64,000 nt of DNA from NCBI GenBank assembly GCA_051530055.1, contig CM121341.1:13246784-13310783 (forward strand). Reading direction: 5' to 3'. Each line of letters opens with the position of its first letter. Positions within the stretch are counted from its first letter, which is position 1. The DNA comes from Neoechinorhynchus agilis (Eukaryota; Animalia; Acanthocephala). Positions 36,797 to 62,512 of this stretch are shown in pieces. The notes below the pieces were generated by a model. The model was not told the DNA's origin, ran no database searches, and saw only the letters and a program-made list of their open reading frames with translations. The position numbers were made by a program, and so were the translations under genes.

Positions 36797-39700
36797 TCAC
36801 TTATTTCTGTTTGGATTGATTGTACGCTCAAACACACACGAAATCCAGTTTCTATTGGAGAAATCCATTTCTGACAGTGGGAGGATGTCTGATCCAAGAA
36901 ATTTAGTGAATGGTGCGAAATGGTGATGCCAATGATCCTTGAGTTGATGAAGAGAACACGAGTAATACGAATCGCTAAGCGATGTTTTTCCCTCATTGAG
37001 CACTGATCGTTCATCGCAATGACAGTTGCATTCGAGTGCAGTGTGTGTGGAACATGAGGTTTCGTGATCAAGAGACAGTAATTCAGCTGCCAGTGGTTTG
37101 CTGTTGAATTTCGTCAAAATTTTTTGAACACTCGTGAAGAGATTTTCGCCATCGATAAGCTTATTTGCTTGCCGCTGTAACATCTTCTCTTCTATTGATC
37201 CGGTAAGTACCAATCGGTAGACAAATGTGTGGTTACATAAGTACGATTCTGACCTTGAAGCAAAGAAATAAAGACGACGAGCGCTTAAAAAAGAACTTAA
37301 GAACATTCTGATCACTTAGATGCACTTTAAAGGAAAAACACAAATCTTAAACGCGATTTCCATTGGACACCGCCTTTCAGCACTAGTCGCCGCCATTTGA
37401 AATCGTTAAAGCGAATTAATTTCAGCATACTCTCTGAAACTAATATATAGATTTTTAGGCAAAGGAATCGAAACGTTCAAATCAATGTTTAAATTTTTCT
37501 TGGCAGAAACTACAAAATTTTACATTAGCTTATTGATATTTTTATGTTATAGATTTTACTCCCACATGACTCCGTGGCTCAATTGGTAGAGCGTCTGACT
37601 CCAGATCAGAAGGTTGCGAGTTCAAGTCTCGTCGGGGTCAAAATGGGGCAAAAATAATTCCAAAATTCGGCCGTTTGAAGGGAAAGAATAGCGCTAATTA
37701 GTTTGTCCTTGCCTCCAGACTCTGCCGATCGCCTGTTCTTCATCTGCAGGATTCCACCCAGAATCAAATAGAATAATAATGTTGGCCGACGGAAGGTTAA
37801 TTCCAACGCCGCCCACTTTTGCACTAATCAACATCAACTGTTGATTCGACGTTTGATTAAAAGTATTGACAAGTTTCTGTCTATCAGAAACGGCTACGGT
37901 TCCGTCTATTCTATGAACAGTGACGTCTTTACCAAATGAGATCGACTGGATCGCGTCAAGACATTTTGTAAAATGACTCGCAACGACAATTCGACACTCC
38001 GGATCTCGTCTTAAACACTCTTTTACCATCCACTCCAAGACAGTCAATTTTCCACTTCGTACCAGATTGTCGCCCGTTCCACACAACAATCGCAAGTTCG
38101 ATATGCATTCAAGAACGTTAGAACAATCCCAACTGTCCAAGAAACCTTCAACCGTCTGGTCATATCTCACAGCTTGTGCTAAACTTGGCCGGCACATCAC
38201 TATCAATTGGGTACATGGAGGAAGTTTCCCTGAGGTTATTGGGAGATTTTTCTAGGCGCAAAAGAATGTTTGATCAATCAGAGAATGTCTTGGATTCTTG
38301 TCTTGGGGTTGAAAGATTCTTTCTTTTGGTAGTTTTGAAACCCCAGATTTAAATTCAATGATGATTTATTTCCGATATTTCACCTTTGATTGTTCCGACA
38401 TTATAATGATTTGTAATTGTTTCGACGTTAAAGCAACGAAGTAACTTGTGAAACAATGACAAACCTTGATAATGTCGGAATTAACGGAGGTAAATTATAT
38501 GGGAAACAAAGCATCAGTGAATTTAAATCCGGGGTTGAAAAACAACCAAAATAAAGTAATCAGAGAATGTTTCATTTCTTTAAGACCTAATCTCAGTGCG
38601 TAAAAATTGTTTTCTTATTCCAAAGATCTTCTCTAAAAGCACTTACCGGTTTTCAAGTTACAAATACGATTTTTTAGTCAACAAATAATGTTTTTCTCTA
38701 AGTATTGTGAACATCTCTTCAAAGGCTGATAATTTTCCATGAATTCTGCGAAGAAAAACCAGTTTTAAATAAAGGAAATAAAAATGGATATTTTGGCATT
38801 AGAGTTGGCCTATCGGCTGCGTTTCTTATAGGTTTAAATTTATCCAGATTTAAAATTACTTTTTTTCTTATTAGAAGAGACGAAAAGGGAACCTCTGAAT
38901 GTTTCGCGACTAGAACTGATACAAAATGAGAAGAAATTAATCGATTGTCCAGAAGAACCTATCTTGGATAAATTGATTTGATACCGTTTTCTTCTAAGCA
39001 AAAATGAATCGATAATAGTGCTGTCGTAAAAGCCATCCTGATCGTCGTTCATTTCCCGACGATTAAAGTCGTTTAGAAACTCATTTATCCGTCCAAGGCA
39101 TCCAGGCGAGCACAGATTTGCCATTGCATGAAATTCGGAGGGTTGATTTTGAAAAGGCGTTCCAGTAAGGAACACTCGTCTGGCGATATCTAATTCCTTG
39201 ATGGCAGCATAGGACTTTAGATTTTGTTTCTTTAATCTGTGAGCTTCATCGCACACCAACAGATCAAATTTAAGATTCTTGAAACTTTGAGCGGACGCGG
39301 TGAGTCGTTCGTAAGAAGTAATGATTATTGGATAACCGCGCAAACCACTAAATGCGGCGAGATCCTTTGGTTCCTTTATAATATAAATAAGACTTGGTCG
39401 ATTACCGAGCCATTTTCCCGATTCTACAAGCCAATTCTTCATCAAAGTACAAGGAACAACGATGAGCACTCGGGCACATATTGGATTCGGCTGACGGTTC
39501 AAAACATTGATCAATGATAAAGTCTGTGCGGTTTTGCCAAGACCGACGTCATCAGCCAAGATAACACCGGTAATTGATGAATCGTAAAGGCCAGTTACAC
39601 GAGTGTACATGAATACGACACCATGGAGTTGGTATGGATGTAAACGTCCAGATATTGACTTGTCTATTGATTCAAAATCAAACCTTCCAGATGGTTTGAT

Positions 39701-40235
39701 TTCAAAGTCTATAAAAAGGCTTTACCGAATTCCGGGTGGTCCGGCATGTAATATGGATTCTGATTGCTTTTGGACATTGAGATGAACTGAGGTTGCCTAA
39801 TATTTTTAGGTCTCTCGGAAACGTTGATCTTTCCATCTTTTTTAGTGCAGGATAACGTTCGGGCATCCAAGTGCTCACCAATCATTGCTGAATATCGTCC
39901 AATCTTCACTATTTCCCCTTCGTTCAAAACACGACTGTGATTAGTACAGCCAATCATCGTCTTGAGATCTGCGTTATCAAACAATCCAATTTTTCCAGAT
40001 TTTAATACTCTTACAAATCCATCGTTCGTCCATTTGATCTTATTAGGTCGTGTTAGTCCGTATTGAGCGCCCAAAATATCACTTTCGGCAAATCCAGTTC
40101 CGTCTTGATCCTCACTAAAATCAAGCGCGTCTTTCCAGTTCCCGATAACTACTGCAACCCTTACCAACGGGATTTCAACGTCCAATCAGCAGCTGGCGTT
40201 CGATTCATTCGACTCGGCGCATTAGATTTCCTCAT
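36797..40235 (-). CDS. RAD54B: RAD54B/RAD54-like SNF2 translocase, multi-exon
   Basis: Start MRKSNAPS (ATG 40235, 50-nt first intron); KIKWTNDG N-terminal domain; ADDVGLGKT, DEAH, TGTPFQN, SGKLTVL, GGVGINL, FDSGWNPA, RVWRQGQ, FVYRLVLTGSIEEK. Several junctions unresolved. Confidence 0.87.
37568..37640 (+). tRNA. trnW-CCA: tRNA-Trp (CCA)
   Basis: GACTCCG/CGGGGTC acceptor stem + A73; D arm GCTC..GAGC; anticodon arm TCTGA-CTCCAGA-TCAGA; T loop TTCAAGT. Confidence 0.97.
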
Positions 40236-40769: not shown

Positions 40770-42430
40770 TATAAACACGTTTTATTAATTTAAGAAAAGA
40801 ACGATCCATACACTTGCCAGCATCTATCTTTGCTGAAGGTGTCTGGATGTCGGATGTTGAGGCAGATAGGTGGGACTTCTCTTTGAAGGAGTTTTACAGG
40901 GGAATGACCGATTGGAGTCTTTCCTTGTTCTCCGGTTGTTAAGGAAAGATTGGGCTTGGGGGAGGAAAGATTTTTGGTAGAGGGTGGTATGAGCGAGGGG
41001 GGATGAAAAAGGTTGGGGTTCTGGGCGTTTACGAGGGAAAAGTATTTAAAGATGAGGGAAGAAAATTGTGGAGGGGGTTGAAGAAGACGGAGGGCGTTTT
41101 TGGAGAAAATGGAGTGGAGGTGGGCGTCGAGGGGAGGGAGTGAAGTCCCGCATATTCTCGCTGCTCTCTTATGGAAGGTTTCGAGGGAATGGAGAGCATT
41201 GAAGGAGAGGGCGAGGAAAGTGGGGAAAATGTATGTAAGGATAGGAAGGATGGCAGAGAGATAAAAGTGGGCAAGGTGTTTAGGGGATACGTTGAGACGC
41301 CGGAGGAGTTTGAGGAGGTAAAGACGAGGGTTTGCTTTAGAGAGTGCAAACGAAATGTTCGCATCCCATTTAAGGTTTTCTTCGAAAGTCAGGCCAAGCA
41401 TTCGGAGAGGAGAGGAACGTTGGATGGGGAGAGCGAGAGGCGCGGGGATAAGATTGCGTTTGGAAATATGCGGGACAAGCTCAAAGGATTTGGATAAATT
41501 TAGGGAGAGGTTTAGGGTGGAGAGCGAGGAAATGAGATGGTTGAGCTCGTCCATGGTTGTGGAGAGGGAGAGAGGGAGATTCGATGGTAATGACTGTGAG
41601 GTCATCTGCATAAAGAAAATATTTGGTAGAGGGAGCGAGGGGATGGAGGTCATTTAGAAAAATGTCAAAGAAGAAAGGGGAAAGTACGGCGCCTTGGGGG
41701 ACCACTTTAAATATTGGTAGAGAAGAGGAGCAAGAAGTTTCACATTGGATATATTGTTTGCGATTGGAGAGGAAAGAGGAAATCCAAGCGAGTTGCCAGG
41801 TTGGGAGGCCAAAGGAAGCACATGATTGGAGGAGGAGGGAGTGATCTACCGACTCAAACGCCCTGGAAATATCCAGTTGCACGAGACGGACGGTTGATGC
41901 TGGACTGGAATCTAAGCTGCACACAAACGTATCGTAGATGCAGAGGAGGGCATCCGAACAAGAGTAATTGGGACGGAAAGCGAATTGGGAAGGGGAGATG
42001 TTTTTGAGGAAGAAGGGAAGTAGGCGGGTTTTAGAAAGGTGAGAGGATAGAGATGGGACGAAAGGATGTGGGGGTAATCGGCTTATCTTTTTTGGGTAGG
42101 GGGACGACACGGGCTTCCTCAAGATACGATGGGAAAGAGCCCAATAGAAAGCTAAGGTTCGTTATGTGCGTTAGAGGATCGATAAGTTCGGGGATGATGA
42201 GACGAATGGCCCGATTTGGGATAGTCGAATTAGGGGAAGAATGTGGGGGCAGGCGTTTAAGGATCTCTAGGATTTCGAGAGGGGAAACTAAGGAAGGGCA
42301 TGTATGAATGGGCGGGTCAAAAAGTGAGAAGGGAGGTTGGGAGGAGGACAGAGGTTTTTATTCATGGAGTTAAGGATTGAGAGGAGATCAGATTTGGGGA
42401 GAGATGCGAAGGGTGTGTATCTACCAAGAC
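40770..42430 (-). mobile_element. 5'-truncated, frameshifted CR1/L2-like LINE (RT region to 3' end); boundaries approximate
   Basis: GSFPSYLEEARVVPLPK, FRPISILS, SQFAFRP, QLDISRAFESVDH, VPQGAVLSP, YADD, LRMLGLTF..LKW, PRLYLLKLLRR across several frames; AATAAA near the 3' end. Confidence 0.9.
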
Positions 42431-43567
42431 CAGTGACATTTTTTATTTCACGCCACCAGTTTCGATTGGGAACGGACGAGAGACGAAACGAAAAACGCCA
42501 AGGTCGAGAATTTACATCGTCTTAATACGATGAAATATTCGAGAATATTAAAGAAATGATTCGAGATGAAGACAAATTTATTGATTTTCTAATAAAGTTG
42601 GTCGGTGTCGGAGATCGGCGAGTAAGGGATTATGAAGAAAAATCGGACACTTCAAGAATTGCTATTCTTTATCTGCTCAAATGTTTTCAAGCTTTCATTA
42701 GAACCGTTTCCCCAATAGCACACTGCAAACCATTTGTCCGTGAGCGTTAATTCGTTATCAATATCCTCGCTGACGTATCGCAAAGCCTTTACGGGATCTT
42801 GAGTCGCAGTGTCCGATTTTTCTACTTCATAATCCCTGATTCTCCGGTCTCCGATGCCGATTACAGAATTAAACGAGAAGGATGAATTTGTGAGCGAAAA
42901 AGATGAATTTTTGAACGAAAAGGAGGAATTCGTTAACAAGGGAAGGCGAGCGGGAGTTCTGAGCATCAGCTCGAGAAAAGCTCCAGAACTTCTCAGCAGC
43001 CTCGACGAATTTTCCACACTTCAATGTCGTTACTTTAACACACTCTTCGCATCTTCATGCGTTCTTGTAGGTTCTTGAGAAAGATGTAAGATGGCGACTA
43101 TTTTATACCTCGATGGAATTTTTTCTGTTCCTTGTATATTTTTTTACTTTAAAGATTAGGACTAGGACAAAAGCGTCACTCGCATGGTGTTTCACGGCCG
43201 TCGAAAGCTTTACTCCTTGACCTGGGTGGAACCTTGAGTGGTGTTTGGCCCGTGGGGGCCGCGTTTGGGTTCAATGCGTTTCTTATGTGTTCATAAATAT
43301 CCCAATGTAGACGACCGGGATATATTGTTGTGCGCATTGGGCAAAGGTTGTTTCGTGGGCGGCATTAAACCTCGTGCAAAGTGGTTTTTCTCGAGACGTC
43401 CGATCTTGGACACTGTTTCGCTTCCTCGTGGCCGGTTGTCCTTGTTAGGATCCGGCATGATTATGGAGTGCTTCTGTGTACTAATTGAACCTCTAGATAT
43501 GTATCATTAAAGAGTCTCTTGATATCGCTCGTTAATTCCTCGCTTACAAATGGGATCCTGAGGATCG

Positions 43568-43950: not shown

Positions 43951-44143
43951 TTTCGCAAGCTCAACCTAGAACGAAAGCGTTTCTACCAAAGAGGAAATTT
44001 TTAGTGCACAAAATATTTTTAATAGAAGCTTTTTAGCATATTTCTCCATTTCAAGCCCGTTTGCAAATTTGATCAGTTAGCGAAAATATGACGAAACATT
44101 CGTATCACTTGCTTTACAGATATTGGATTTTTCTAAGAGATTC

Positions 44144-45358
44144 ATGGTAGGAATGGGAAGACTGCCATTAAAAGAAATATCGTGGACATTTCGCACTGTT
44201 GTATCTATAACAGCCAGCAGGCGTTTTCTTAGTTCTATTTCACGGGTAGATTTCCTGTGCCAACAACAAACAAAGTCTACAGAAGTAGCTGCTGGACCAA
44301 AATCAAATCGAATAGTCCGAGCTTTGGCTGCTCTTCGTCCAGCTGAGCCACTAAAGCCGGTAAATATCTATCGACGAGATCCCGATGAAGATGACGCCGT
44401 TATCGAGATCGATTACTGCGGGATTTGCCATTTTGATATTCACAATGCAAAAAACGACTACAAAATGACACAATTTCCAGTTGTTCCGGGACACGAGATC
44501 GTCGGTCGGGTAATCGAACGTGGCAGCAATGTCTCCGATTTCGCAATTGGCGATAAGGTAGCCGTTGGAACCTACGTCGATACCTGCCGAGAGTGCCGAA
44601 TGTGCATAGCAGGGAGCGAGGAATACTGCAATAAACCCGGCGGGCTCATTATGACTTACAACAGTCCATATAAAAAAGACAAACGAAAGTGTACTTTGGG
44701 CGGATATAGCAGGCAGATCGTCGTGGATAAAAATTACATATTTCATTTACCGGAAAATCTTCCACCTGAACGAGCCGCTCCTCTACCTTGTGCCGGAATC
44801 ACTGTTTACATGCCGCTTAAGCGTTACAATGTTCGTAAAGGTTCCGAAGTTGCTGTAGCGGGTCTCGGAGGCCTCGGTCACATGGCGTTAAAACTTTCGG
44901 TAGCCATGGGTGCTCGATGTACGGTTTTAAGTCGGACTGATAAGAAAAAGGAGATGGCAACGAAGATGGGCGTTCATGAATTTGTAGTAACGTCTGACAA
45001 ATCAAAGCTTGCGTCCTATAAAAGACGATTCGACGTAATTGTCGATTCAATCAGTATGTACCATGACATAGACGAGCTACTTGGTCTTTTGAACGTAGGC
45101 GGAAGTTTAGTGTTGGTTGGATTGCCTCCTGAGCAGTATAAATTCTCCGCACGGTCTGTTGTACGAACAAGATCCTTTATAACAGGATCGACAATGGGAT
45201 CCTTGAAGGATATCCGGGAAATGTTTGAGCTTTGCTCGAAGCATGGAATCACCTGCGAAGTAGAGGTTATAAGACCCGATCAAGTCAATGAGGCGTACGA
45301 GAGGGTTCTTAAAGGTGATGTTCAGTTCAGATTCGTGATGGATATGAGCAAGCTTTGA
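44144..45358 (+). CDS. Intronless NADP(H)-dependent Zn alcohol dehydrogenase (CAD/YahK/AdhC-type MDR), copy 1, with N-terminal presequence
   Basis: YCGICH, VPGHE, structural Zn Cx2Cx2Cx7C, CAGIT, GLGGLGH, FRFVMD. First ATG at 44144 (the ORF track starts at a TTG). Confidence 0.93.
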   Translation: MVGMGRLPLKEISWTFRTVVSITASRRFLSSISRVDFLCQQQTKSTEVAAGPKSNRIVRALAALRPAEPLKPVNIYRRDPDEDDAVIEIDYCGICHFDIHNAKNDYKMTQFPVVPGHEIVGRVIERGSNVSDFAIGDKVAVGTYVDTCRECRMCIAGSEEYCNKPGGLIMTYNSPYKKDKRKCTLGGYSRQIVVDKNYIFHLPENLPPERAAPLPCAGITVYMPLKRYNVRKGSEVAVAGLGGLGHMALKLSVAMGARCTVLSRTDKKKEMATKMGVHEFVVTSDKSKLASYKRRFDVIVDSISMYHDIDELLGLLNVGGSLVLVGLPPEQYKFSARSVVRTRSFITGSTMGSLKDIREMFELCSKHGITCEVEVIRPDQVNEAYERVLKGDVQFRFVMDMSKL

Positions 45359-45636
45359 TGTTTGTTATTCCAGAGACCCGAATATATTTCGGTTTGGTAG
45401 TTTGCAGGATGGACATTTTCTGAAGTGTCAAAATAATTGTTGCTACTTTGGCATGTCTCCTTTATATCAAAATAAAATAATTCAATGATAGCTAATAATG
45501 CCATCAGATACTTATGTATTGATGATAAATTCATAAATATAAACGGTTTTGCAAAAACTGCACTTATGATCAACAATTTTCTTCATTTCGTCCATGTAGA
45601 AATGCGCAAACGTGGCCAAACGGTTTAAATGGATGA

Positions 45637-45684
45637 TTGCTGTGGCGGGTCTCGGAGGTGCAGTCACATGGCTTTGAAACTTTC
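45637..45684 (+). pseudogene. 48-bp frameshifted remnant of the ADH nucleotide-binding motif
   Basis: TTGCTGTGGCGGGTCTCGGAGG-TGCA-GTCACATGGCTTTGAAACTTTC versus ADH TTGCTGTAGCGGGTCTCGGAGG-CCTCG-GTCACATGGCGTTAAAACTTTC. Confidence 0.7.
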
Positions 45685-47049
45685 AGCAGAGTTTTTCAGA
45701 GACGAAAACAACGCCCATGTTCGTATTTATGATATGAAGATATCCGTTCATTTAGGCATAGTTTCAAGTGAACGCGCGTCTAATTTAGACTTCATGTTCT
45801 ATTTCCATTAAAATGCTTATCATGTCTTCATGTTTCATAGTGTTCTTATTTTCTGTCGAAATCTACGCATGATATAGATTGGAAAACACTATAACTAAGC
45901 GAATTGGCCGGGACCGCATATTCCGTGAAATGATAGTTTTGCAAGCTTGGCGAATGAGACGAAACGAATTGCAAATGAGTAATGCCACGAGCCTAAATCA
46001 CATTATCTGAGTACGATGAAATGTTTGAGAAGATAAAGGAAATCATAGAGAATTATCGTCGGAGTGAATTCTATTCGAGTTTGGCGATGTATTCCCTCCG
46101 GATTCTTGTTGCTGTTGATCATTTATTCAAAATATTTCGTAAGCTTTCTGCTCTCCTCTTCAGTTATATTGCTTGTAAGTTTTTAAATATTCGAGTCTCC
46201 TGAAAACGTTGGTCAGCGGCGAATACCGTACCGTCCGTGGAAATGATAGTTTTAGGAATAAAACGAAAAGATATGCGGATGAGGACGCGAAAAACAAACG
46301 GATATAAGTGGTCTTTTACGTAGACGATACTTTGGATGATTAGTTCGACGGAAACGGTACATCATCTGAGTAAAATGGAATAGTTAATCAATTAAAGAAA
46401 ATAATCGCAAATGAGGATTAGAAAACGTATATACGCCGCATTACTCTACAGAAATAACGAGATTTACCGTTGATTATGAAAATTTGTGAAAAACCTTAAA
46501 GAGCTCTTAAAGGTGTCTTGTTGATTCCTAATTGGAAAACGGTTCAATTATTTTTGGTGATTGTATCCATCGATGGTACCAATAAATAATTTGGAATTCA
46601 TTCAGTTTTCAGAGGTACACAGAAATCTTTACGGATCTAAATAAAAATAAAACGTCGGATTTCAATTGGAGAAGCAGAAGTGGTCGATAATAGATGAATT
46701 TATTTCCACACATAAAACAAAAATGAACATCGTCCAAAGGAAGACACAATGCTTCGCGCTGATCACCAACTTTAACTTCGTAATTTTGATATGAATTTCA
46801 AAAATAAGAAAAAATCGTGAAAGTTCTTATAAACATACATGAAATTCCTTAAAAGGAAAAATCGTGCTTATGTAGCAGATAATTTTATTGTCGGGTTGAG
46901 AAAGGTATTATCTATTTTCTAATATTTTTTGATAAAATGTCAACGCGGAAACAACTTTTGTAACTCGATCACATCGATAAATCCATCTTTTAGGGTTAAA
47001 AAACAAGAAGCAAAATCCTAAAATACCAATAAACAATTTCTAAATATAA

Positions 47050-50000
47050 TAAAGGACATCGTTTAAACAAGAAGCGATGTATCGCACTGTTTACTAAATT
47101 TAACTATGCAATTTCGATATTTATTTTAGAAATAAGAAAAAAACGAAGCGCGTTCTCGATAAATCCCGCTTCTGAAGTACAACGAAACTGCGTAAAACAC
47201 TAAAATAGAAATAATTTCTTTCCACGGATAAAAAAAGGAAGATCGTCCAAACAAGAAGCGATGTATCGCACTCATTACAAAATTTAACCTTGTAATTTCG
47301 ATACTTATTTTCAAAATAAGAAAAAAAACGAAGCGCGTTCTCGACAAATCCCGCTTCTGAAGAACAACGAAACTGCGTAAAACACTAAAATAGAAATAAT
47401 CTCTATCCGCAGATAAAAAAAGAACATCGTCCAAACAAGAAGCGATGTATCGACCTGATTACAAAATTTAACTTTGTAATTTCGATACTTATTTTCAAAT
47501 AAGGAACAAACGAAGCGCGTTCTCGATAAATCCCGCTTCTTAAGTACAACGAAACTGCGTAAAGTACTAAAATAGAAATAATTCATTTCCAAAGATAAAA
47601 AAGAACATCGTCCAAACAAGAAGCGATGTATCGCACTGATTACAAAATTTAACTTTGTAATTTCGATACTTATTTTAAAACTAAGAAAAAAACGAAGCGC
47701 GTTCTCGATAAATCCAGCTTCTGAAGTGCAACGAAACTGCGTAAAAGACTAAAATAGAAATAATTTCTTTCCACTGATAAAAACGAACATCGTCAAAAGC
47801 AACAAGCGATGTATCGCACTGATTACAAAATTAAAAGCTTGCAATTTCGATACTTATTTTAAAAATGAGAAAAAACGAAGCGCGTTCTCGAATAAACCCC
47901 GCTTCTAAAGAACAACGAAACTGAGTAAAACACTAAAATAGAAATAATTTCTTTCCACAGATAGAAAAACGAACTTCGTCCAAACAAGTAGCGATGTATC
48001 GAACTTATTAAAAAATTTAACTTTGTAATTTCGATACTTATTTTAAAACTAAGAAAAAAACGAAGCGCGTTCTCGATAAATCCAGCTTCTGAAGTGCAAC
48101 GAAACTGCGTAAAACACTAAAATAGAAACAATTTCTTTCCACTGATAAAAACGAACATCGTCAAAAGCAACAAGCGATGTATCGCACTGATTACAAAATT
48201 AAAAGCTTGAAATTTCGATACTTATTTTAAAAATGAGAAAAAACGAAGCGCGTTCTCGAATAAACCCCGCTTCTAAAGAACAACGAAACTGAGTAAAACA
48301 CTAAAATAGAAATAATTTCTTTCCACAGATAGAAAAACGAACTTCGTCCAAACAAGAAGCGATGTATCGAACTTATTAAAAAATTTAACTTTGTAATTTC
48401 GATACTTATTTTAAAATAAGGAAAAAACGAAGCGCGTTCTCGAAAAATCCCGCTTCTGAAGTACAACGAAACTGCGTAAAACACTAAAATAGAAATAATT
48501 TCTTTCAACAGATAAAAAACGAACATCGTCCAAACAAGAAGCGATGTATCGCAATGATTACAAAATTTAACTTTGTAATTTCGATACTTATTTTAAAATC
48601 AGGAAAAAACGACGCGCATTCTCAATAAATTACGCTTCTGAAGAACAACGAAACTGCGTAAAAGAATAAAATAGAAATAATTTCTTTCAACAGATAAAAA
48701 CGAATATCGTCCAAACAAGAAGCGATGTATCGCACTGATTACAGAATTTAACTTTGTAGTTTCGATACTTATTTTAAAATAAGGAAAAAACGAAGCGCGT
48801 TCTCGATAAATCCCGCTTCTGAAGTACAACGAAACTACGTAAAACACTAAAATAGAAATAATTTCTTTCAAAGGATAAAAAACGAACATCGTCAAAAGAA
48901 AGAAGCGATTTATCGAACTGATTACAAAATTTCACTTTGTAATTTCGATACTTATTTTCAAAGTTAGAAAAAACGAAGCGCGTTCTCGATAAATCCCGCT
49001 TCTGAAGTACAACGAAACTGCGTAAAACACTAAAATATATATAAGTTCTTTCTTATAAATAACGAACACCGTAAAAAGCAAGGAGCGATGTATCGTACTC
49101 ATTACAAAATTTAACTTTGTAATTTCGATACTTATTTTCAAAATAAGAAAAAACGAAGCGCGTTCTCGACAAATCCCGCTTCTGAAGTACAACGAAACTG
49201 CGTAAAACACTAAAATATAAATAATTTCGTTCAACAGAATAAAAACGAACATCATTAAAAGCAAGAAGCGATGTATCGCACTGATTACAAAATTTAACTT
49301 TGTAATTTCGATACTTATTTTAAAATAAAGAAAAAAAGGATGCGCGTTCTCAAAAAATACCGCTTCTGAAGTACAACGAAACTGCGTAAAACACTAAAAT
49401 ATAAATAATTTCGTTTAACAGATAAAAAAACGGTCGTCGTCAAAACAAGAAGCGATGTATCGCACTTATCACAAAATTTAACTTTGTAATTTCGATACTA
49501 ATTTTCAAAATAAGAAAAAAACGGAGCGCGTTCTCGATAAATCCAGCTTCTGAAGTGCAACGAAACTGCGTAAAACACTAAAATATAAATAATTTCTTTC
49601 CACTGATAAAAGCGAACATCGTCAAAAGCAAGAAGCGATGTATCGCACGGATTGCAAAATTTAACTTTGTTATTTTTATACTTATTTTCAAAATAAGAAC
49701 AAAACGAAGCGCATTCTCGATAAATACCGCTTCTGAAGTACAACGAAACTGCGTAGAACACTAAAATAGAAATAATTCCTTTCAACAGATAAAAAACGAA
49801 CATCGCCCAAATAAGAAGCGATGTATCGCACTGATCACAAAATTTAACTTTGTAATTTTTATACTTATTTTCAAAATAAGAAAAAAACGAAGCGCGTTCT
49901 CGATAAATCCCGCTTCTGAAGTACAACGAAACTGCGTCAAAAACCAAATTAAAAATAATTTCTTTCCACAGATAAAAAACGAACATCGTCAAAACAAGAA

Positions 50001-52486
50001 ACGATGTATCGCACTGATTAAAAAATTTAACTTTGTAATTTTGTTACTTGTTTTCAAAATTAGAAAAAAACGAAGCGCGTTCTCGACAAATCCCGCTTCT
50101 GAAGTACAAAGAAACTGCGTAAAAGAATAAAATAGAAATAATTTCTTTCAACAGATAAAAACGAATATCGTCCAAACAAGAAGCGATGTATCGCACTGAT
50201 TACAGAATTTAACTTTGTAGTTTCGATACTTATTTTAAAACTAAGAAAAAAACGAAGCGCGTTCTCGATAAATCCAGCTTCTGAAGTGCAACGAAACTGC
50301 GTAAAACACTACAATAGAAATAATTTCTTTCCATGGATAAAAAACGAAGACGTCTAAACAAGAAGCGATCTATCGCAATCATTACAAATTTTTTTTTTGT
50401 TTTTTTGGGGTTTGTTATTTTACTTTTTAATTTCGATACTTATTTCAAAAATAAGAAAAAACCAAGCGCGTTCTCGATAAATCCCGCTTCCGAAGCACAA
50501 GAAAACTGCGTAAAACACTGAAATAGAAATAATTTCTTCCAACAGATAAAAACGAACATCGTCAAAAGAAAGAAGCGATTTATCGCACTGATTACAAAAT
50601 TTCACTTTGTAATTTCGATACTTATTTTCAAAGTAAGAAAAAAACGAAGCGCGTTCTCGATAAATCCCGCTTCTGAAGTAGAACGAAACTGCGTAAAACA
50701 CTAAAATATACATAAGTTCTTTCTTCTTATAAATAACGAACACCGTAAAAAGTAAGAAGCGATGTATCGCACTGATTACAAAATTTAACTTTGTAATTTT
50801 TATACTTATTTTCAAAATAAGAACAAAACGAAGCGCGTTCTCAATAAATCCCGCTTCTGAAGTACAACGAAACTGCGTCAAAAACCAAATTAAAAATAAT
50901 TTCTTTCCACAGATAAAAAACGAACATCGTCAAAACAAGAAACGATGTATCGCACTGATTAAAAAATTTAACTTTGTATTTTTGTTACTTGTTTTCAAAA
51001 TTAGAAAAAAACGAAGCGCGTTCTCGACAAATCCCGCTTCTGAAGTACAACGAAACTGCGTAAAACACTAAAATAGAAATAATTCCTTTCAACAGATAAA
51101 AAACGAACATCGTCCAAATAAGAAGCGATGTATCGCACTGATCACAAAATTTAACTTTGTAATTTTTATACTTATTTTCAAAATAAGAAAAAAACGAAGC
51201 GCGTTCTCGATAAATCCCGCTTCTGAAGTACAACGAAACTGCGTCAAAAACCAAATTAAAAATAATTTCTTTCCACAGATAAAAAACGAACATCGTCAAA
51301 ACAAGAAACGATGTATCGCACTGATTAAAAAATTTAACTTTGTAATTTTGTTACTTGTTTTCAAAATTAGAAAAAAACGAAGCGCGTTCTCGACAAATCC
51401 CGCTTCTGAAGTACAACGAAACTGCGTTAAACACTAAAATAGAAATAATTTCTTTCAACAGATAAAAAACGAACATCTTCCAAATAAGAGGCGATGTATC
51501 GAACTGATCACAAAATTTAACTTTGTAATTTTTATACTTATTTTCAAAATAAGAAAAAATCGATGAGCGTTCTCGACAAATACCGCTTCTGAAGTACGAC
51601 GAAACTGCGTAAAACACTAAAATAGAAATAATTTCTTTCCACTGATAAAAACGAACATCGTCAAAATCAAGAAGCGATGTATCGCACTGATTGCAAAATT
51701 TAACTTTGTAATTTTTACACTTTTTTTAAAAATAAGAAAAAAACGAAGCGCGTTCTCGATAAATCCCGCTTCTGAGGTACAACGAAACTGCGTTAAAAAC
51801 CAAAATAGAAATAATTTCTTTCAACAGATAAAAAACGAACATCCTCGAAACACGAAGCGATGTATCACACTGATTACAAAATTTAACTTTGTAATTTCGA
51901 TACTTATTTTCAAATTAAGAAAAAAACGAAGCGCGTTCTCGATAAATCCCGCTTCTGAAGTACAACGAAACTGCGTTAAACAGTAAAATAGAAATAATTT
52001 CTTTCCACTGATAAAAAACGAACATCGTCAAATGCAAGAAGCGATGTATCGAACTGATTACAAAATTTAACTTTTTAATTTCGATACTTATTTTAAAAAT
52101 AAGAAAAAAACGAAGCGCGTTCTCAATAAATCCCGCTTTTGAAGTAGAACGAAACTGCGTAAACACTAAAATAGAAATAAGTTCTTTCCACAGATAAAAA
52201 ACGAACATCGTCCAAGCAAGAAGCGTTGTATCGCACTGATTACAAAATTTAACTTTGTAATTTCGATACTTATTTTCAAAATAAGAAAAAAACGAAGCGC
52301 GTTCTGGATAAATCCCGCTTCTGAAATACAACGAAACTGCGTAAAACACTAAAATAGAAATAATTTCTTTCCACAGATAAAAAACGAACATCGTCCAAAC
52401 AAGAAGCGATGTATCGCACTGATTACAAAATTTAACTTTGTAATTTTGATACTTATTTTCAAAGTAAGAAAAAACGAAGCGCGTTC
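47050..52486. repeat. ~183-bp tandem satellite, about 30 copies
   Basis: AAACGAAGCGCGTTCTCGATAAATCCCGCTTCTGAAGTACAACGAAACTGCG... at 47141, 47326, 47508, 47690 and onward; diverged longer units flank it (46710-47050, 52487-52680). Confidence 0.98.
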
Positions 52487-52689
52487 ACATAAACATGCTT
52501 GAAAATCTTTAGAATAAAAAATTGTATTTTTGTATCGGTAATTTTTCTATTGCTTTATTAAAAAAGTTCTGTCTTCTTTTATAGACATATTTTAGTAGAT
52601 CAACGTGGTTGCAACTTTGATAACTCGTTCAGATCGAGAAATCCCGCTTCTGAAGTGGAACGAAAAGGCGTAAAGCACTACACACTTCT

Positions 52690-54250
52690 TATAGCTTTCT
52701 CTCACACTACAGAGGTCGCTTTGCCAGCTTGTCCTCAAAAATCAAACTTCATCCGATCGTCTTAGGTCCTCCATCGCACTATCTTTCCATCTTTTTTCGG
52801 CCTTCCCCGTTTCATCTTCCCCTTGACCTCAGTGCGTCCGGCGCTCTTTATGCAATCGTCTTCTGCTCGTTAATCGACATGATGGAACCATCGCATTCTT
52901 CTTTTGGCTATCACTTCCTGCACCGGCTCGACGTCGAACATTTTTCTAATCTCGGCATTGGGCTTTTTATCTCTGCGTGTTACTCTAGCTGACCATCTCA
53001 GCATCTTCATTTCATTTACAATCAATCTCTGTACGTCCTCCTATTTTGTAGCCCAAATCTCCGCTGCGTATACCATTACATGTCGTACCACTGCTTTGTA
53101 CACGCGCCCTTTGAGCTTGTTCAGGAGACGTATATCGCACAGGATGCCCGTTACTCTTTTTCAGTTATTCCACCGACATTGTACCCTCTGCCCAATTTCA
53201 GGTGCAAGTTCACAGGGCACGTTAACTCCCTGCATGCCTACTTCGCTTGGTCCCATATCGTTTTGCTCCTGCTAATTTTCAGGCCGTTGCTTTCTAAGCA
53301 CTGTCGCCAACTCTCCAACATTTTCTCGAGTGTCACCGAGTCCCTTGCCGTGAGCAGCAGATCATCTGCAAATAATATCGTCCAGGGCGCGTTCATCTCT
53401 GTATTTCCTAGGGCATCGATGACTGTCGCGAACAAGAATGGGCTAAGCACTGAACCTTGATGTAGACCAATGGACACCTGAAAATAATCTGTCCTTCCTT
53501 TTTGACATCGCACGCTGGTGTAACACTTTTCATACATCGTTTTGATCGTGATCACATAATGCTCTGGACAGTTTCTCTTGCCCAAGCAGGCCCAAATCAA
53601 GTCTCGGAACACGGTGTCATATGCTTTCTCCTGGTCGATGAAGACACTATGCAACGAACGATGCTTCTCATTAAATTTTTCATACAGCTGTCTTAGCACG
53701 AAGATCACGTCGATTGTGCTTCTACCTGGCATAAAGCCGCGTTGGTATTCACTGATTTGGATATCCTCCCTAATCCTATTGTCAACCATCCGCTCCCACA
53801 ATTTCATTGTGTGGGACATCAGCTTGATGCCACGCTAATTGCTACACTGCAAAATATTTCCTTTACCCTTAAAAATCGGCACAAGTATGCTTCTTTGCCA
53901 TGCTGACGGAATCGTTTGCTTTGCATCTGTCTTTCGAAAAAGTTTAGTAAGCAGTTTGACTTCGAATGCGTCCAAACATTTCCATAACTCAATCGGGATG
54001 TTATCTGGACCGGTACTCTTTCTTACCAATCTTCATCTTTCTGATCTTCGATGCGACGTCATTGCAAGAATACGGTCTAGCCATATTGATATTCAGCTGT
54101 GCTTGTTAAATAGGCAATCTTTCATTCTCTGTGTTCAGGCGGGATCTGAAGTACTCCTTCCATCTGTTCAAAATATCGTTGTTTTGATCGAGCATACTAC
54201 CCTCACTGTCGTTGATCATTTTGTGCCGTACGATGTCCCTTGACCTCATC
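52690..54250 (-). mobile_element. 5'-truncated, disrupted RTE-clade LINE; boundaries approximate
   Basis: LNRWKEYF, KSTGPDNIP, SHTMKLWERMV, GFMPGRST, FIDQEKAYDTV, LHQGSVLSP, FADD, GKMKRGRPKK; frameshifts and stops. Confidence 0.92.
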
Positions 54251-55899
54251 CAACAGTTTTACACCCTCAGCGTTTGTGTCCACCATGGATTCGCTCGTAT
54301 CACTCTCTCGGATTTAAACTCGACCGGAGGCCAGCGGCTTCGCATTTGATGCTAAGTGTAAATTAAATCAATAAAAATATTGTATTATTTTAAAGAAACT
54401 TGCGACAATTCGATTAATGAAAGTTGTCCTTCTTGGTACTCTGAGTTTTTGTGGTGACTAAGTTAGCCCATGGACTTCGCACTATTGAACATCATCACAG
54501 TTTGTTTAAAATCTGCGGATTTCACTGATTTTTAAGGTACGAAGAGATCATTTTCTACGACATGATTTTATTAAGATTTTTATGACAGCTATCGGAATTA
54601 AAAGCACGAAGTTACGTGAGCCAATTGGATGTTTCCTGATCAAGTAATTCAATAAAATAACCAATATTTATTTGTGTATTGAGTTCTGAAAACAATGCGA
54701 TGCTGATGGTTTCTGGTGGGATGCTGTGCTAGTTTGATTAATGATGACTCAGTAGAAACCTCAAATATTTAAATGTCATTTTACGACACAACGAAAACAA
54801 AGGGTTTCTTAAATAATGAAGATTAGCAAAAGTTACGATGATGCGACCTTCTACACGAACATCCATGATTCCTTTGGTTCATTGAAGGAATAATCCGTGT
54901 AATTTTATCAGCTCGTCCAGTGCATCGATTGATGTGTGAAATAACCAACGATGAAAAGTTGTTCACTTATTTGAGAATGAAAGCCGTTTTTAGTTTCTGC
55001 GGAATTAATTAAAGCAGTCTTATTGCGCAGTTTAATTTCTCACAGAAATCGTTTTTGTTCATTCGCAACATCTACTAAAAATTATTATTCCGTACAGACT
55101 AGATATCGACAACAAAAACGCTTTTATTGGCTACAATCGAATTGCATAAGAACTTTTATTGAGATGCGGTGATTATAATCCCGGATAGCGCGATAGCGAC
55201 AGCCGAGGAAGGAGAGAAGCTCCAATTTTGCGGACGGTGGTGATTGCACGTTTTGTACTTAATTATTCTAAGACTTTTTAAATCAAAGTAAAAAAGCGAA
55301 AAAATATCTTTTATTGAATTGAAAGATTTCGCGAGGAAGCCTCACTTTATCAGTCATTGTTTGCAAGTTTTCCAAAAGTGTAGCGAAATATCTCTCAATT
55401 CAATAAAATATTTATATCCGGGATTTTTACGATTACATCTCCAATTCTAGTATCTTGAATGATTTTCTAATGATTAAAACCCTTTATCTTGGCTCTATGG
55501 AAAAAATTCGGTTGCTGACTAAAGTTTTTGAATTTTGTTTGCTTGAATCTCGAAGTCAAAACATATTTGCTGTCGTCTTAATGTTGTAGCATTCGTTTGT
55601 TGAAAGTTTGATGTGCATTGCAAGGACTTGCTCAATCCGTCACCTCGATTTACTCATTAAAAGCGCAATGGATAGATATTTAGGGTTGGTTTTGTGATCG
55701 TAGAATAAAAATGCGCGACGGAAATCAGTTATTTACGATAAAACAATTTGAAGGGCGGTGACCTATTTAACGGAAAAACTTCTGATTTGCAGCACAAATA
55801 AAATCTTGAATGGTTTCATAATTGAACTCTAATCTGTTTTTATAATTTTGCCGCCATGCAACTGATTCCATTACTTTATACGCTTGCAGATACAAGAAA

Positions 55900-57099
55900 A
55901 TGCTAAGACTGGCATTTACTCACATTTCTCGTATTCTTCGCGTGTCGACAACGCCTCTGAATATGCGATCTTTCAGTCCTATGTCTCCGTCTCGACTCTT
56001 CTCGTATCATCATATGCCGCCAGAACTAGCCGCTGGACCAAAATCAAATCGAATAGTCCGAGCTTTGGCTGCTCTTCGTCCAGCTGAGCCACTAAAGCCG
56101 GTAAATATCTATCGACGAGATCCCGATGAAGATGATGTCGTTATCGAGATCGATTACTGCGGGATTTGCCATAGCGATATCCACAATGCCAGAAATGAAT
56201 GGAATACTACACAATTTCCAGTTGTTCCGGGACACGAGATCGTCGGTCGGGTAATCGAACGTGGCAGCAATGTCTCCGATTTCGCAATTGGCGATAAGGT
56301 AGCCGTTGGAACCTACGTCGATACCTGCCGAGAGTGCCGAATGTGCAAAGCAGGGAGCGAGGAATACTGCGATAAACCCGGCGGGCTCATTATGACTTAC
56401 AACAGTCCATATTGGAAAGATGCTGAAGTTCCTACCTTGGGCGGATATAGCAGGCAGATAGTCGTGGATAAAAATTACATATTTCATTTACCGGAAAATC
56501 TTCCACCTGAACGAGCCGCTCCTCTGCTTTGTGCCGGAATCACCGTTTTCATGCCTCTGAAGCGTTACAATGTTCGTGAAGGTTCCGAAGTCGCTGTAGC
56601 GGGTCTCGGAGGCCTCGGTCACATGGCGTTAAAACTTTCGGTAGCCATGGGTGCTCGATGTACGGTTTTAAGTCGGACTGATAAGAAAAAGGAGATGGCA
56701 ACGAAGATGGGCGCTCATGATTACGTGATTACTACCGATAAATCAAAACTGTTATCCTACCAAAGAAGATACGATGTTATTATTGATGCCATTAGTGCGT
56801 ACCATGACGTTAATGAACTACTTGGTCTTTTAAATGTAGGCGGAAATTTAGTGTTAGTTGGATTGCCTCCTGAGCAGTTGAAGTTTACGGCTAGATCCGT
56901 AATTCGAACTAAGTGTTCCATAACTGGATCCGCAATTGGGTCTCGCAAAGAAACGAAGGAAATGCTTGAGCTTTGTTCAAAGCATGGAATCACCTGCGAA
57001 GTAGAGGTTATAAGACCCGATCAAGTAAATGAAGCTTATGATCGAGCATTGAAAGGCGATGTTCAATTTAGATTCGTGATGGATATGAGCAAGCTTTGA
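55900..57099 (+). CDS. Intronless NADP(H)-dependent Zn alcohol dehydrogenase (CAD/YahK/AdhC-type), copy 2, with mitochondrial-type presequence
   Basis: CGICHSDIH, GHE, Cx2Cx2Cx7C, APLLCAGIT, GLGGLGH; N-terminus MLRLAFTHISRILRVS..SRLFS is Arg/Ser-rich with no acidic residues. Confidence 0.95.
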   Translation: MLRLAFTHISRILRVSTTPLNMRSFSPMSPSRLFSYHHMPPELAAGPKSNRIVRALAALRPAEPLKPVNIYRRDPDEDDVVIEIDYCGICHSDIHNARNEWNTTQFPVVPGHEIVGRVIERGSNVSDFAIGDKVAVGTYVDTCRECRMCKAGSEEYCDKPGGLIMTYNSPYWKDAEVPTLGGYSRQIVVDKNYIFHLPENLPPERAAPLLCAGITVFMPLKRYNVREGSEVAVAGLGGLGHMALKLSVAMGARCTVLSRTDKKKEMATKMGAHDYVITTDKSKLLSYQRRYDVIIDAISAYHDVNELLGLLNVGGNLVLVGLPPEQLKFTARSVIRTKCSITGSAIGSRKETKEMLELCSKHGITCEVEVIRPDQVNEAYDRALKGDVQFRFVMDMSKL

Positions 57100-57791
57100 T
57101 GTCTTCATGCTTGGCAGAAAATTATCACTTCTAAATAAATCATCAATTAGCATTTTTTTAGTGATGGGATCCAGGATTTTCTTAAAAAGCGAGAATGTTT
57201 GAGATTCAATTCGCTAATATACTCTTCGCTGAGCTTTATGATCAACGCCCCGGATAAATAGTAAGGAAGTAATAGGAATTTATTAGTTGCGCAAGCAAAA
57301 TATCAAAAACGTAATCTTTGATACGAAGAACCGTGATTATCGTTGTTGAGTGAAGAATTTATTTTTTTTCGAAGTTTGATTTGAGAACTTTATATAGTAA
57401 ATTTTAAGCGCAGTGAATACTACTTGAGTTGTAGACTTTAGCTCACGAACATCTCCAAACACCAGTCCGCAATTTAGGATTAATTCTGGCTACAGCAGCG
57501 GAGCAAAAGTGATTTCTAAAATATAGATAGTTACAGATTTCAACTTTGTTCCCCTTTGACCGGAGACTTTATGGGCCCTAGGAGAATCGGCGCTGAAAAC
57601 GATGGACGAGAGATGGACTCTAACGCATGAGCTTTTGTTTGCCAGACTATTAACACCGTAATCCAGCGAGCAAGTACCGCCAGCGTAAAGGGATGGCAGC
57701 GTTATGTTTATGTGAAAAATATACAAAAAATTAACTAAGGCGACATTTTTGTCTAATTTGAACAAATTCATTTTACGAATATTACATTAAT

Positions 57792-58990
57792 ATTTGTTGA
57801 TAGGAGAGATAAATGAAATTAATATTTTATTGGATATTTCGATCCACTATCTCGGGCAGCCCGTTAGCTCCTGTGCTTGCTGAGCTGCATATACGGCACT
57901 GGGAGGACGAACATTTGTCGTCGATACAGGGTGTGAATATCTGATTCAGATATGTGGACGACACGTTCTTGTTGATTAACCCTTCAGAGACTAATATGGA
58001 TCGCCTTAAACATGAACTGAATGGAAGGGACGACAATATTCAGTGGACGATCGAGGAGGAGGACCATGGTAAGTTTCCGTTCCTGGATGTGTGGATATAC
58101 CGATTAGCCAGTGGAAACTACACGACCAGCGTGTACCGAAAGAGAGGTATACCAGTGGGCCTTGTGCCATGGACATCTGCCCAACCTCGCAAATACAAAA
58201 TTTCGAGGATTAGGTCACTCATCCATCGTGCTCTTACACATTGTAGCAACGCTAAGTTGTGTAACGAGGAGATTGATTACCTGAAGTGCATATCAGGTCG
58301 ATATGGTTATCCTCTCCATCTTGTCGAACGGTGCATTCGGAATGTGCGTCACACCTTCAATGGGGAGACAAAGTCTAAAAAGGAAGAGATCTATGTTGAA
58401 CTGCCATTCCCTGATGATCATTCTTATCTTGCTATGGAGCGCATCATAAAATCAGGATGTGAGGCCAAGATAGTAAATGTATACACAAAGAGGGGACGCA
58501 CTCTACACGGATTGATATGTCCTAAGAATGGCCAACAGTCATCTGGTGCGGTCTACAAAATTCCGTGTTCCGGTTGCGAACAGGTCTATGTGGGGCAGAC
58601 CAACAATTTCACCCGACGGATGAAGGAGCACGAATCATCAGTTGTTCGCAACACGGATATTAGTTCCGCAGTGGTGGCCCGTGCAAAAAACACAGGGCAC
58701 ACTGTTGATTTTAGTGCCGCTACAACACTAGTTTGCAATGGTCGGCGTTTCGAACGTATTATCATCGAATCCTTATATATAAATAGGTTCTAAACGTTCG
58801 AGGGCAATAAACCTGATTTCAAATTAAGGATGCGACTCCCACCGGATGTTATGTGACGCGTGAATTGAGAATCCCTGTGTATGTGTTTTAGATTGCTGAA
58901 GAAGATCCGAGATAGTGGATCGAAATATCCAATAAAATCTTAATTTCATTTATTTTCTCCTATCAACAAATAACAATGAATTATCTTTTC
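57792..58990 (+). mobile_element. 5'-truncated Penelope-like element with inverted pseudo-LTR and 14-bp TSD
   Basis: RT GSPLAP..(TGA)FRYVDD, FPFLDV, YRK; GIY-YIG GAVYKIPCSGCEQVYVGQT. 57792-57855 is the reverse complement of 58907-58971; AATATTACATTAAT at 57778-57791 and 58991-59004. Confidence 0.93.
58892..58933 (+). ncRNA. Minimal type I hammerhead ribozyme in the PLE 3' pseudo-LTR
   Basis: ATTG-CTGAAGA-A-GATCC(GAGATAGT)GGATC-GAAA-T-ATC^-CAAT: stem I ATTG/CAAT, 5-bp stem II, loopless palindromic stem III ATAT, predicted cut after 58929. Confidence 0.85.
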
Positions 58991-59887: not shown

Positions 59888-59936
59888 TTGTTTTCCCAAG
59901 CTTTCGCCGTTTAACGGCCTCTTCAGGGATCTACAA
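59888..59936 (-). ncRNA. Type I hammerhead ribozyme, intact core (array unit, minus arm)
   Basis: TTGT-AGA-TCC-CTGAAGA-G-GCCGT(TAA)ACGGC-GAAA-G-CTT^-GGG-AAA-ACAA on the minus strand. Confidence 0.8.
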
Positions 59937-62452: not shown

Positions 62453-62512
62453 AAGACTTATAAATAAGTGCGCAAATTGTCAAACAAAATTTAAGGGGAC
62501 AAAGATTAAACA

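Follow-up and report, generated by a model that had tools for sequence, protein, structure and literature searches.

We analyzed a 64,000-nucleotide stretch of contig CM121341.1 from the acanthocephalan Neoechinorhynchus agilis (hereafter, the window), in which two open reading frames (ORFs), here called c1 and c2, are genuine nuclear genes for zinc-dependent medium-chain dehydrogenases/reductases (MDRs) of the cinnamyl alcohol dehydrogenase (CAD)/YahK branch. They are members of an alcohol dehydrogenase (ADH) gene family that spans two acanthocephalan classes, and the history that we consider probable, though with real room for doubt, is a single ancient acquisition, probably from a bacterium, with duplication, gene conversion, and domestication coming after it. 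The phenomenon of foreign genes in such animals is itself known; what is new here is the anatomy of the domestication and a family that spans two classes.

Both ORFs lie where the first-pass annotation, made from the sequence letters alone, had put them, and its assignment of the products to the CAD/YahK branch of NADP(H) MDRs is borne out by Pfam domains, by the closest solved structure, and by the residues of the cofactor pocket. The c1 frame is open from 44123 to 45358 on the forward strand with an upstream TTG start, and its first ATG at 44144 yields 404 residues. Neither ORF contains an internal stop, and the two proteins are 80% identical. Both carry ADH_N (PF08240; 8.8e-24 in c1 and 7.6e-26 in c2) and ADH_zinc_N (PF00107; 8.2e-20 and 2e-22), far above the curated gathering scores. 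The best solved relative is Escherichia coli YahK (1uuf, E=3.6e-96, 326 bits), followed by plant cinnamyl, sinapyl, and hydroxygeraniol dehydrogenases, whereas yeast Adh6p (224 bits) and NAD-dependent ADHs of the classical types (at most ~200 bits) score much lower. The AlphaFold model of c2 (mean predicted local distance difference test score of 89) superposes in Foldseek on the NADP(H)-dependent CAD/YahK structures 6k3g, 1yqd, and 1uuf with template modeling (TM) scores of 0.94-0.95 and root-mean-square deviations of 1.3-1.8 Å, and all of its top structural matches are NADP(H) enzymes. Matching 131-aa antisense ORFs occur within both genes (44351-44746 and 56092-56487, reverse strand); we do not regard them as genes, as they are most simply by-products of the conserved sense frame.

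The two genes share uninterrupted sequence with animal genes and eukaryotic transposable elements, with no runs of N in the 64-kb window. The contig (19.4 Mb) comes from an assembly of Oxford Nanopore and Illumina reads with Hi-C scaffolding and BRAKER annotation (PMC12690905), and all 22505/22505 bases around the deposited gene model ACOME3_003105, which contains c1 (window 32854-55358), are identical to CM121341.1. Third-codon-position GC content is 0.40-0.42 in the ADH genes and 0.37-0.43 in neighboring host genes. Bacterial contamination or a chimeric assembly would explain why the nearest matches outside Acanthocephala are bacterial, but it is at odds with a gap-free window that has animal genes, a tRNA, long interspersed nuclear element (LINE) and Penelope-like sequences, and satellites on both sides of the genes, with their host-like codon composition, with only ~52% identity to any bacterium, with four paralogs at two loci, and with spliced, polyadenylated transcripts of an ortholog in another species. 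The probability that remains for this explanation is negligible. Contamination, which the first-pass annotation had already called unlikely, is effectively refuted by the gap-free sequence, the animal genes and transposable elements alongside, the host-like composition, and the AATAAA signals behind both genes.

Homologs were sought in protein databases (5.8 billion proteins) and by an exhaustive profile search (1.84 billion representatives). N. agilis itself has a second tandem pair, ACOME3_001305 and ACOME3_001306 (hereafter 1305 and 1306), on the same chromosome 7.4 Mb away, at ~5.86 Mb on CM121341.1 (L002 7536-8624 and 10001-11098). Each of these genes is a single exon, 58-59% identical to c2, and the pair has innexin genes, which are not known outside animals, on one side and a POLQ-like helicase on the other. 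Pomphorhynchus laevis, which belongs to a different acanthocephalan class, has at least two homologs, GJ496_004707 and GJ496_004599. Finally, two mRNA-like contigs from the Sequence Read Archive (SRA) runs SRR6291271 and SRR19345920 have GJ496_004599 as their nearest named relative, a likeness on which we judge their sources to be probably acanthocephalan. The set of eight acanthocephalan proteins compared below comprises four from N. agilis, two from P. laevis, and two from other SRA runs.

One shared trait is a motif, GPxx[GN], that occurs at the same N-terminal position in 8/8 acanthocephalan proteins versus 0/~494 other homologs. It ends a short leader that sits a few residues before the start of the bacterial proteins (M..KAYA), and this leader can be followed across classes: N. 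agilis 1305 starts with MSTKIPGPQNG, and P. laevis GJ496_004599 starts almost identically with MSTEEIPGPRNG. Both P. laevis genes have the same phase-2 intron, which interrupts the Gly codon of GP following its second base and has a GTAAGT donor and a TTTTAG acceptor. In each of the six genes examined, one exon encodes the whole ADH domain. A P. laevis transcript, TRINITY_DN121_c0_g1_i1 (1460 nt; PMC7310846 tables S7 and S4), encodes exactly MSTEEIPG joined to PRNGG and onward to the stop, and it maps to the genome as two blocks 16.8 kb apart, which confirms both expression and the splice in P. laevis. The GenBank model of GJ496_004599 (L008 6001-24026, WNNJ02003313.1) wrongly treats ~30 in-frame residues as an intron; the P. 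laevis ORF at 22863-24023 is continuous in genome and transcript, and the sole real intron is the one of 16.8 kb after MSTEEIPG. A loop that is one residue longer is found in 7/8 acanthocephalan proteins versus ~5% of others, and a strict search for exclusive synapomorphic columns returned only one, Leu in place of Phe/Tyr in the MLELC segment. In purpose-written maximum-likelihood (ML) quartet mapping (Gonnet-derived rate matrix, four gamma categories), N. agilis joined the other acanthocephalans in 76-95% of quartets, as opposed to bacterial and eukaryotic alternatives. On the GPxxG motif and this quartet support, we take the acanthocephalan genes to be one clade inherited vertically within Acanthocephala. 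Because the family is present in both Eoacanthocephala and Palaeacanthocephala, any transfer predates their split; the first-pass scenario of a transfer into this genome followed by local duplication is thus contradicted by a clade whose motif and quartet affinities are shared by N. agilis and P. laevis.

The c1/c2 pair differs from the 1305/1306 pair in carrying ~45 extra N-terminal residues. The c2 leader has five Arg, three His, and its first acidic residue only at position 42; it includes an amphipathic stretch at residues 5-15 (hydrophobic moment of 0.73, with controls averaging 0.51 and reaching 0.76) and R-3-type motifs (RSF/S and RLF/S), and it is disordered in the AlphaFold model. With three acidic residues, the c1 leader is a poorer likeness. 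By these heuristics, the ~45-residue leader of the pair resembles a mitochondrial presequence.

Upstream of the leaders, the description of both genes as intronless holds for the ORFs, which are uninterrupted, but not for the genes as deposited: putative splice acceptors, each a pyrimidine-rich stretch ending in AG, lie at 44119/44120 and 55889/55890, and the deposited models put introns there. The c1 model places an exon upstream of its intron (43069-44119) that has no Pfam match and no match in the family and that overlaps a low-complexity region. In our own reconstruction, only a splice from 55168 to 55890 yields the annotated 404-aa model of c2 with its start at 55164, which implies an intron at 55169-55889 and a first coding exon of 5 nt (ATGCG, 55164-55168), an implausible structure. 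The deposited 5' ends of both genes therefore look partly artefactual, with real introns of the 5' untranslated region probably forced into the coding sequence, and the fact that BRAKER spliced into both acceptors suggests 5' introns with RNA-seq hints. The further contrast that the first-pass annotation drew with spliced host genes is weak, since intron-poor genes are normal here: a neighboring lectin is one uninterrupted ORF of 441 codons, and a DnaJ gene has about one intron of 50 nt.

As the first-pass annotation proposed, c1 and c2 are duplicates. BLAST aligns the two genes at the DNA level (88% identity) over a stretch that opens with the mature domain and closes 3 nt beyond the stop, and it finds no DNA alignment between their leaders or flanks. 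Within the alignable stretch, divergence is mosaic. Over mature codons 1-225, the synonymous divergence (dS) is ~0.10 and the ratio of nonsynonymous to synonymous divergence (dN/dS) is ~0.5, while over mature codons 226-358, dS is 1.2-1.3 and dN/dS is 0.096. Such a mosaic implies gene-conversion tracts, and the high dS where no conversion has occurred implies that the duplication is old. Gene conversion has repeatedly homogenized the 5' two-thirds of the mature coding region, and both copies have been under strong purifying selection for most of the time since duplication. The second pair has undergone the same process: a ~400-nt central tract of 1305 and 1306 (codons ~121-255) is 100% identical and the flanking coding DNA ~30% divergent, the mark of a recent gene-conversion tract.

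Outside Acanthocephala, the named matches are bacteria, protists (Hondaea and Mesostigma among them), and plants (often as fused two-domain gene models), and by every measure of similarity the slowly evolving N. agilis proteins are nearest to bacterial enzymes of the YahK/AdhC type. The best bacteria are 52-53% identical to them and the best other eukaryote 47-49%. A pan-acanthocephalan profile gives the top bacterium 501 bits, versus 431 bits for the top eukaryote outside Acanthocephala, and ranks ~340 bacterial-type sequences above the latter. Mean ML distances are about 1.08 for bacteria (with ML distances of about 0.9-1.1) and 1.27-1.43 for other eukaryotes. The contigs that carry the top bacterial-type matches are bacterial and operon-like, with MutY, YggX, and RadA as neighbors. 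In a comparison of eukaryotic CADs and a bacterial group, B1 (Lysobacter, Nitrospira, Chlorobiaceae, Pyrinomonadaceae, Myxococcales, and two operon-like contigs), 74% of the ML quartets unite N. agilis with B1 and 20% with the CADs (71 versus 12 among those with strong support), a preference opposite to the pull of long-branch attraction. On these sequence comparisons, a non-vertical origin is likely, and a bacterial donor is the best-supported option, favored rather than proven. The first-pass proposal of horizontal gene transfer (HGT) of bacterial-type genes is accordingly supported as to the nearest relatives outside Acanthocephala, while a bacterial source is not proven by trees that leave the deep placement open. 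The AdhC of Waddlia chondrophila falls in one of the two bacterial clusters (P0024) that are nearest to the acanthocephalan family by mean distance. W. chondrophila is an obligate intracellular, Chlamydia-related bacterium, and a donor of its type is possible, which we offer as a lead and not as a result. A scan of Genome Taxonomy Database genome contigs with peptide patterns specific to the N. agilis lineage returned one irrelevant 31% match and no information on the donor.

A number of results count against an ancient bacterial acquisition or limit how far it can be pressed. No other metazoan is among the matches listed from the protein and profile searches, in which the genomes of rotifers, Seison, and other animals were not searched directly. 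Group B1 was picked from the best matches and is hence favored in the quartets. The long-branch P. laevis-type and Logan sequences join eukaryotes in 58-62% of quartets, although this is the direction that long-branch attraction predicts. Neighbor-joining (NJ) trees from Kimura or ML distances (236, 466, and 41 taxa) did not resolve the deep placement and even pulled P. laevis GJ496_004707 to the outgroups, an effect of long-branch attraction, so that our reading does not rely on them. In the tree from ML distances, most acanthocephalan sequences stand beside Hondaea, Mesostigma, and plants, joined by a branch of 0.012. Quartets with the distant outgroups AdhP, FrmA, and Ahr divide 40%, 23%, and 37% among the three topologies and are uninformative. 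Acanthocephalan monophyly has 14-15% bootstrap support in whole-family NJ trees, in which deeper nodes have ~0%, and the P. laevis proteins are 41-43% identical to those of N. agilis and 42-47% identical to those of bacteria. The presequences of c1 and c2 show weak homology to each other (z=3.8 for DNA and z=1.3 for protein). Lastly, an exact-protein look-up recovered no N. agilis transcripts of c1 or c2, so that the deposited annotation is the basis for expression and 5' introns in this species; neither gene is mentioned in the N. agilis transcriptome paper or one of its supplements.

Among these results, the identities of the P. laevis proteins, whose likeness to N. agilis is no greater than to bacteria, would fit several independent acquisitions, one for the N. 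agilis genes and one for each of two lineages in P. laevis, from different bacteria. The best bacterial matches do differ, being Pseudoalteromonas-like for GJ496_004707, Bacteroidota- or cyanobacteria-like for GJ496_004599 and P0132, and Lysobacter-, Nitrospira-, or Waddlia-like for N. agilis. Separate captures would leave without explanation, however, a GPxxG leader that lies outside the bacterial domain and is common to all members, the near-identical MSTxxIPGPxNG N-termini of different species, the longer loop, the intron position shared by two P. laevis paralogs, and the monophyly in quartets. We consider independent acquisitions very unlikely and continue to favor a single one.

The tree from ML distances bears instead on the two explanations that invoke eukaryotes. 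One is vertical inheritance, with an ancestral eukaryotic MDR of the CAD type retained by acanthocephalans and lost from essentially all other animals. Plants, fungi, and protists widely possess members of the CAD family, the top representatives include Hondaea and Mesostigma, the long-branch acanthocephalan sequences lean toward eukaryotes in quartets, and acanthocephalans and Seison are fast-evolving with extensive gene loss (bioRxiv 10.1101/2024.08.01.605096). Yet the branch that joins acanthocephalans to eukaryotes is very short, the slowly evolving N. agilis copies are nearer to bacteria by identity, profile score, ML distance, and quartets alike, the ADH domain is uninterrupted by introns, and many independent losses across animals would be needed; we judge this history improbable. 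A vertically inherited metazoan grouping, the outcome that the first-pass annotation had set against HGT, is found within Acanthocephala and extends to no other metazoan in our list of matches. The other explanation is HGT from a protist, alga, or fungus. Such a donor would suit both the NJ topology and the 47-49% identities of eukaryotic CADs, and Hondaea and the top representative P0121 (JGI/Logan) score well. Against it stand the many bacterial-type sequences that outscore the best eukaryote, the quartet preference for bacteria, the lack of any intron within the domain, and an animal-specific leader that begins exactly at the bacterial protein start. A eukaryotic donor therefore seems to us unlikely, and a bacterial one remains our preference.

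Turning to function, alignment to YahK places the catalytic zinc ligands (Cys of CGxCH, His of PGHE, and Cys of LLCAG), the four structural-zinc cysteines, and the GLGGLG motif in both c1 and c2, and the zinc-ligand columns are invariant across 53 homologs. The cofactor segment VLSRTDKKK aligns with AFTTSEAKR of YahK and is rich in Ser/Thr and Lys with no acidic residue; NAD-dependent enzymes have an acidic residue at this position. The copies differ at the Ser of the CHSD motif, which corresponds to Ser/Thr48 of classical ADHs, where the proton relay starts. This residue is ancestral and found in 83% of 459 homologs; c2 retains it as AGC, whereas c1 has Phe (TTT). All three codon positions differ, implying either a passage through a TCN serine codon or a change made in several steps. 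In total, c1 has 8-9 changes at positions that are >80% conserved among the 459 homologs, including CHSD to CHFD, PLLCAG to PLPCAG, and Trp to Tyr, whereas c2 has one. A relative-rate count does not show c1 to be faster in number of changes (17 versus 13, p=0.58), and only the kind of site differs. Because family-conserved sites have been altered in c1 since the last conversion, this copy, with its frame intact, is probably losing activity or shifting function, while c2 looks catalytically competent in its residues. YahK reduces a broad range of aldehydes, does not reduce ketones, and loses >99% of its activity with NADH (PMC3684718). By analogy, c2 and probably 1305 and 1306 would be NADPH-dependent aldehyde reductases that convert aliphatic or aromatic substrates to alcohols. 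At the residue aligned with Cys88 in the YahK pocket (VGVGC; PMC3684718), the worm enzymes have Thr or Val (VAVGT), and the substrate range may thus differ.

Put together, these observations suggest the following course. A bacterial yahK/adhC-like gene would have been captured once, before the divergence of Eoacanthocephala and Palaeacanthocephala, and the captured ORF would have gained a short animal-specific leader ending in GPxxG, part of which came to lie, in P. laevis, on a separate first exon joined through the phase-2 intron. The gene would also have gained eukaryotic 3' signals as its composition came to match that of the host. The family may then have split into several lineages, leaving N. 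agilis with two tandem pairs, of which the extension-less 1305/1306 is presumably cytosolic, whereas c1/c2 would have gained the extension of ~45 residues that resembles a mitochondrial presequence. Repeated conversion would have kept c1 and c2 alike over much of the mature coding region, with c2 reducing aldehydes to alcohols with NADPH in the manner of YahK and c1 losing or changing its activity.

Acanthocephalans reproduce strictly sexually, live as endoparasites, and are nested within the rotifers, which of all animal groups are the best known for foreign genes; well-dissected single cases of HGT are scarce. This family supplies one, and with it a stepwise view of how a prokaryotic ORF may become an animal gene: integration, a leader and an intron at the domain junction, a confirmed splice, duplication into forms that may be targeted differently, concerted evolution, and an apparently decaying copy. 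As far as our searches show, the enzyme class does not occur in the fish or mammal hosts, a property sought in antiparasitic targets, and the family may bear on the aldehyde and ethanol metabolism of the worms. In acanthocephalans, glycogen is quickly fermented to ethanol (PMC7310846). The family could conceivably be part of this fermentation, with a cytosolic extension-less pair and a mitochondrial c1/c2 lineage that use NADPH to reduce acetaldehyde, or other aldehydes from fermentation or the host, and with a Waddlia-type, Chlamydia-like bacterium as the possible donor. We hold this extended scenario to be doubtful; if it were true, the acquisition would have been an enabling step toward anaerobic gut parasitism. 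The main text and table S8 of the P. laevis genome paper (PMC7310846) suggest a separate AdhE-like fermentation enzyme in acanthocephalans, possibly also foreign.

The features of the window are listed in Table 1. The first-pass placement of the ADH genes among LINEs and satellite DNA is confirmed by the mapped 183-bp array, two reverse-transcriptase fragments, and a Penelope-like element. Four unrelated tandem arrays make up ~40% of the window, at 1-15663 (196-bp unit), 24233-25740 (297 bp), 47056-52493 (183 bp), and 59487-64000 (338 bp); the first spans 15.7 kb and has a higher-order periodicity of 392 bp.

Table 1. Features of the ADH loci and their surroundings, in window coordinates.
Feature	Position	Strand	Basis and remarks
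c1, 404-aa CAD/YahK-type zinc MDR	44144..45358	+	ORF, Pfam; GenBank model ACOME3_003105 (= P0001, contains the c1 sequence) adds an upstream exon
c2, 399-aa CAD/YahK-type zinc MDR, conservative copy	55900..57099	+	ORF, Pfam, structure matches, AlphaFold model; catalytic and cofactor motifs all intact
c1 stretch alignable with c2 in DNA	44280..45361	+	BLAST, mosaic divergence
c2 counterpart of the alignable stretch	56021..57102	+	BLAST
c1 N-terminal extension (~46 aa), R/S/T-rich, RFL/S motif, 3 acidic residues	44144..44281	+	Sequence; not in bacterial homologs
c2 N-terminal extension (43 aa), mitochondrial-presequence-like	55900..56028	+	Sequence heuristics, model
c1 junction motif AAGPKSN (acanthocephalan-specific GPxx[GN])	44288..44308	+	Alignment; just upstream of the bacterial protein start
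c2 junction motif AAGPKSN	56029..56049	+	Alignment
c1 Phe97 codon TTT, in place of the proton-relay Ser of CHSD	44432..44434	+	Alignment
c2 Ser92 codon AGC, CHSD motif intact	56173..56175	+	Alignment
Annotated c1 upstream exon (MPITELNEK...), 71 codons, putative coding	42854..43068	+	Deposited model
Putative 3' splice acceptor upstream of c1 (tgctttacag)	44110..44119	+	Sequence; needed by the ACOME3_003105 protein
Putative 3' splice acceptor (acgcttgcag), 10 nt before the c2 ATG	55880..55889	+	Sequence
AATAAA polyadenylation signal, 113 nt past the c1 stop	45471..45476	+	Sequence
AATAAA polyadenylation signal, 35 nt past the c2 stop	57134..57139	+	Sequence
Satellite array between c1 and c2, 183 bp, 29.6 copies	47056..52493	.	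Tandem-repeat scan
LINE-type reverse-transcriptase fragment	53238..53819	-	Pfam (RVT_1, E=2.3e-26)
Degenerate reverse-transcriptase fragment upstream of c1	41484..42161	-	Pfam (RVT_1, E=3.7e-24)
Penelope-like element fragment: reverse-transcriptase C-terminus with YVDD motif and GIY-YIG endonuclease	~57849..58793	+	Domain match
SNF2-family helicase, spliced animal gene (SNF2-rel_dom and Helicase_C exons)	37694..40185	-	Domains, annotation
tRNA-Trp(CCA), adjoining the 3' end of the opposite-strand SNF2 gene	37567..37641	+	Rfam (70.4 bits)
DnaJ gene, type I, CXXCXGXG zinc finger	33638..34947	+	Domains, annotation
L-type lectin (ERGIC-53/VIP36-like), single ORF	21519..22844	+	Domains

When compared with known systems, the worm proteins share a superfamily and zinc chemistry with the classical animal MDR-ADHs (class I/III ADH and sorbitol dehydrogenase). 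Those enzymes, however, belong to a different subfamily, use NAD, and have another quaternary and loop structure; c2 stands at an ML distance of 3.0-3.2 from FrmA (class III ADH type) and AdhP of E. coli, versus ~0.9 from the nearest bacterial YahK-type sequences. The plant and yeast CADs (sinapyl and cinnamyl alcohol dehydrogenases, 10-hydroxygeraniol dehydrogenase, and Adh6p) are of the same MDR subfamily, use NADP(H), and match at TM scores of 0.93-0.94 with 35-43% identity. They are nevertheless less similar to the worm proteins than bacterial members are, the quartets put N. agilis with bacteria, and no evidence ties the worm genes to lignin or terpenoid pathways. The closest likeness is to YahK (1UUF) and mycobacterial AdhC, which share the two-domain zinc MDR fold (TM score of 0.95), the length of the mature domain, the catalytic zinc ligands and structural-zinc cysteines, GLGGLG, and an NADP-type pocket; identity is 43% with YahK and reaches 52-53% with other bacterial members. 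Unlike these, the worm genes lie on an animal chromosome and encode the GPxxG leader, Thr/Val at the position of Cys88, IGS for IGG, and one extra loop residue, to which c1/c2 add the presequence-like extension and c1 the loss of the catalytic Ser.

As a case of gene acquisition, the family is best set beside the foreign metabolic genes known from syndermatans, of which bdelloid rotifers provide the classic example. In the P. laevis genome paper, an index screen marked 4.8% of proteins as HGT candidates (PMC7310846). That paper does not discuss the present family, whose transcript appears only in its Trinotate table, with Mycobacterium tuberculosis AdhC as the best SwissProt match. Like the bdelloid genes and the P. 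laevis candidates (PMC7310846), the genes described here encode an enzyme of non-metazoan type, lie among transposable elements, are ameliorated in composition, have introns and leaders, are expressed, and are duplicated. What sets them apart is that the host is a strictly sexual endoparasite and that the acquisition would be ancient and common to two acanthocephalan classes.

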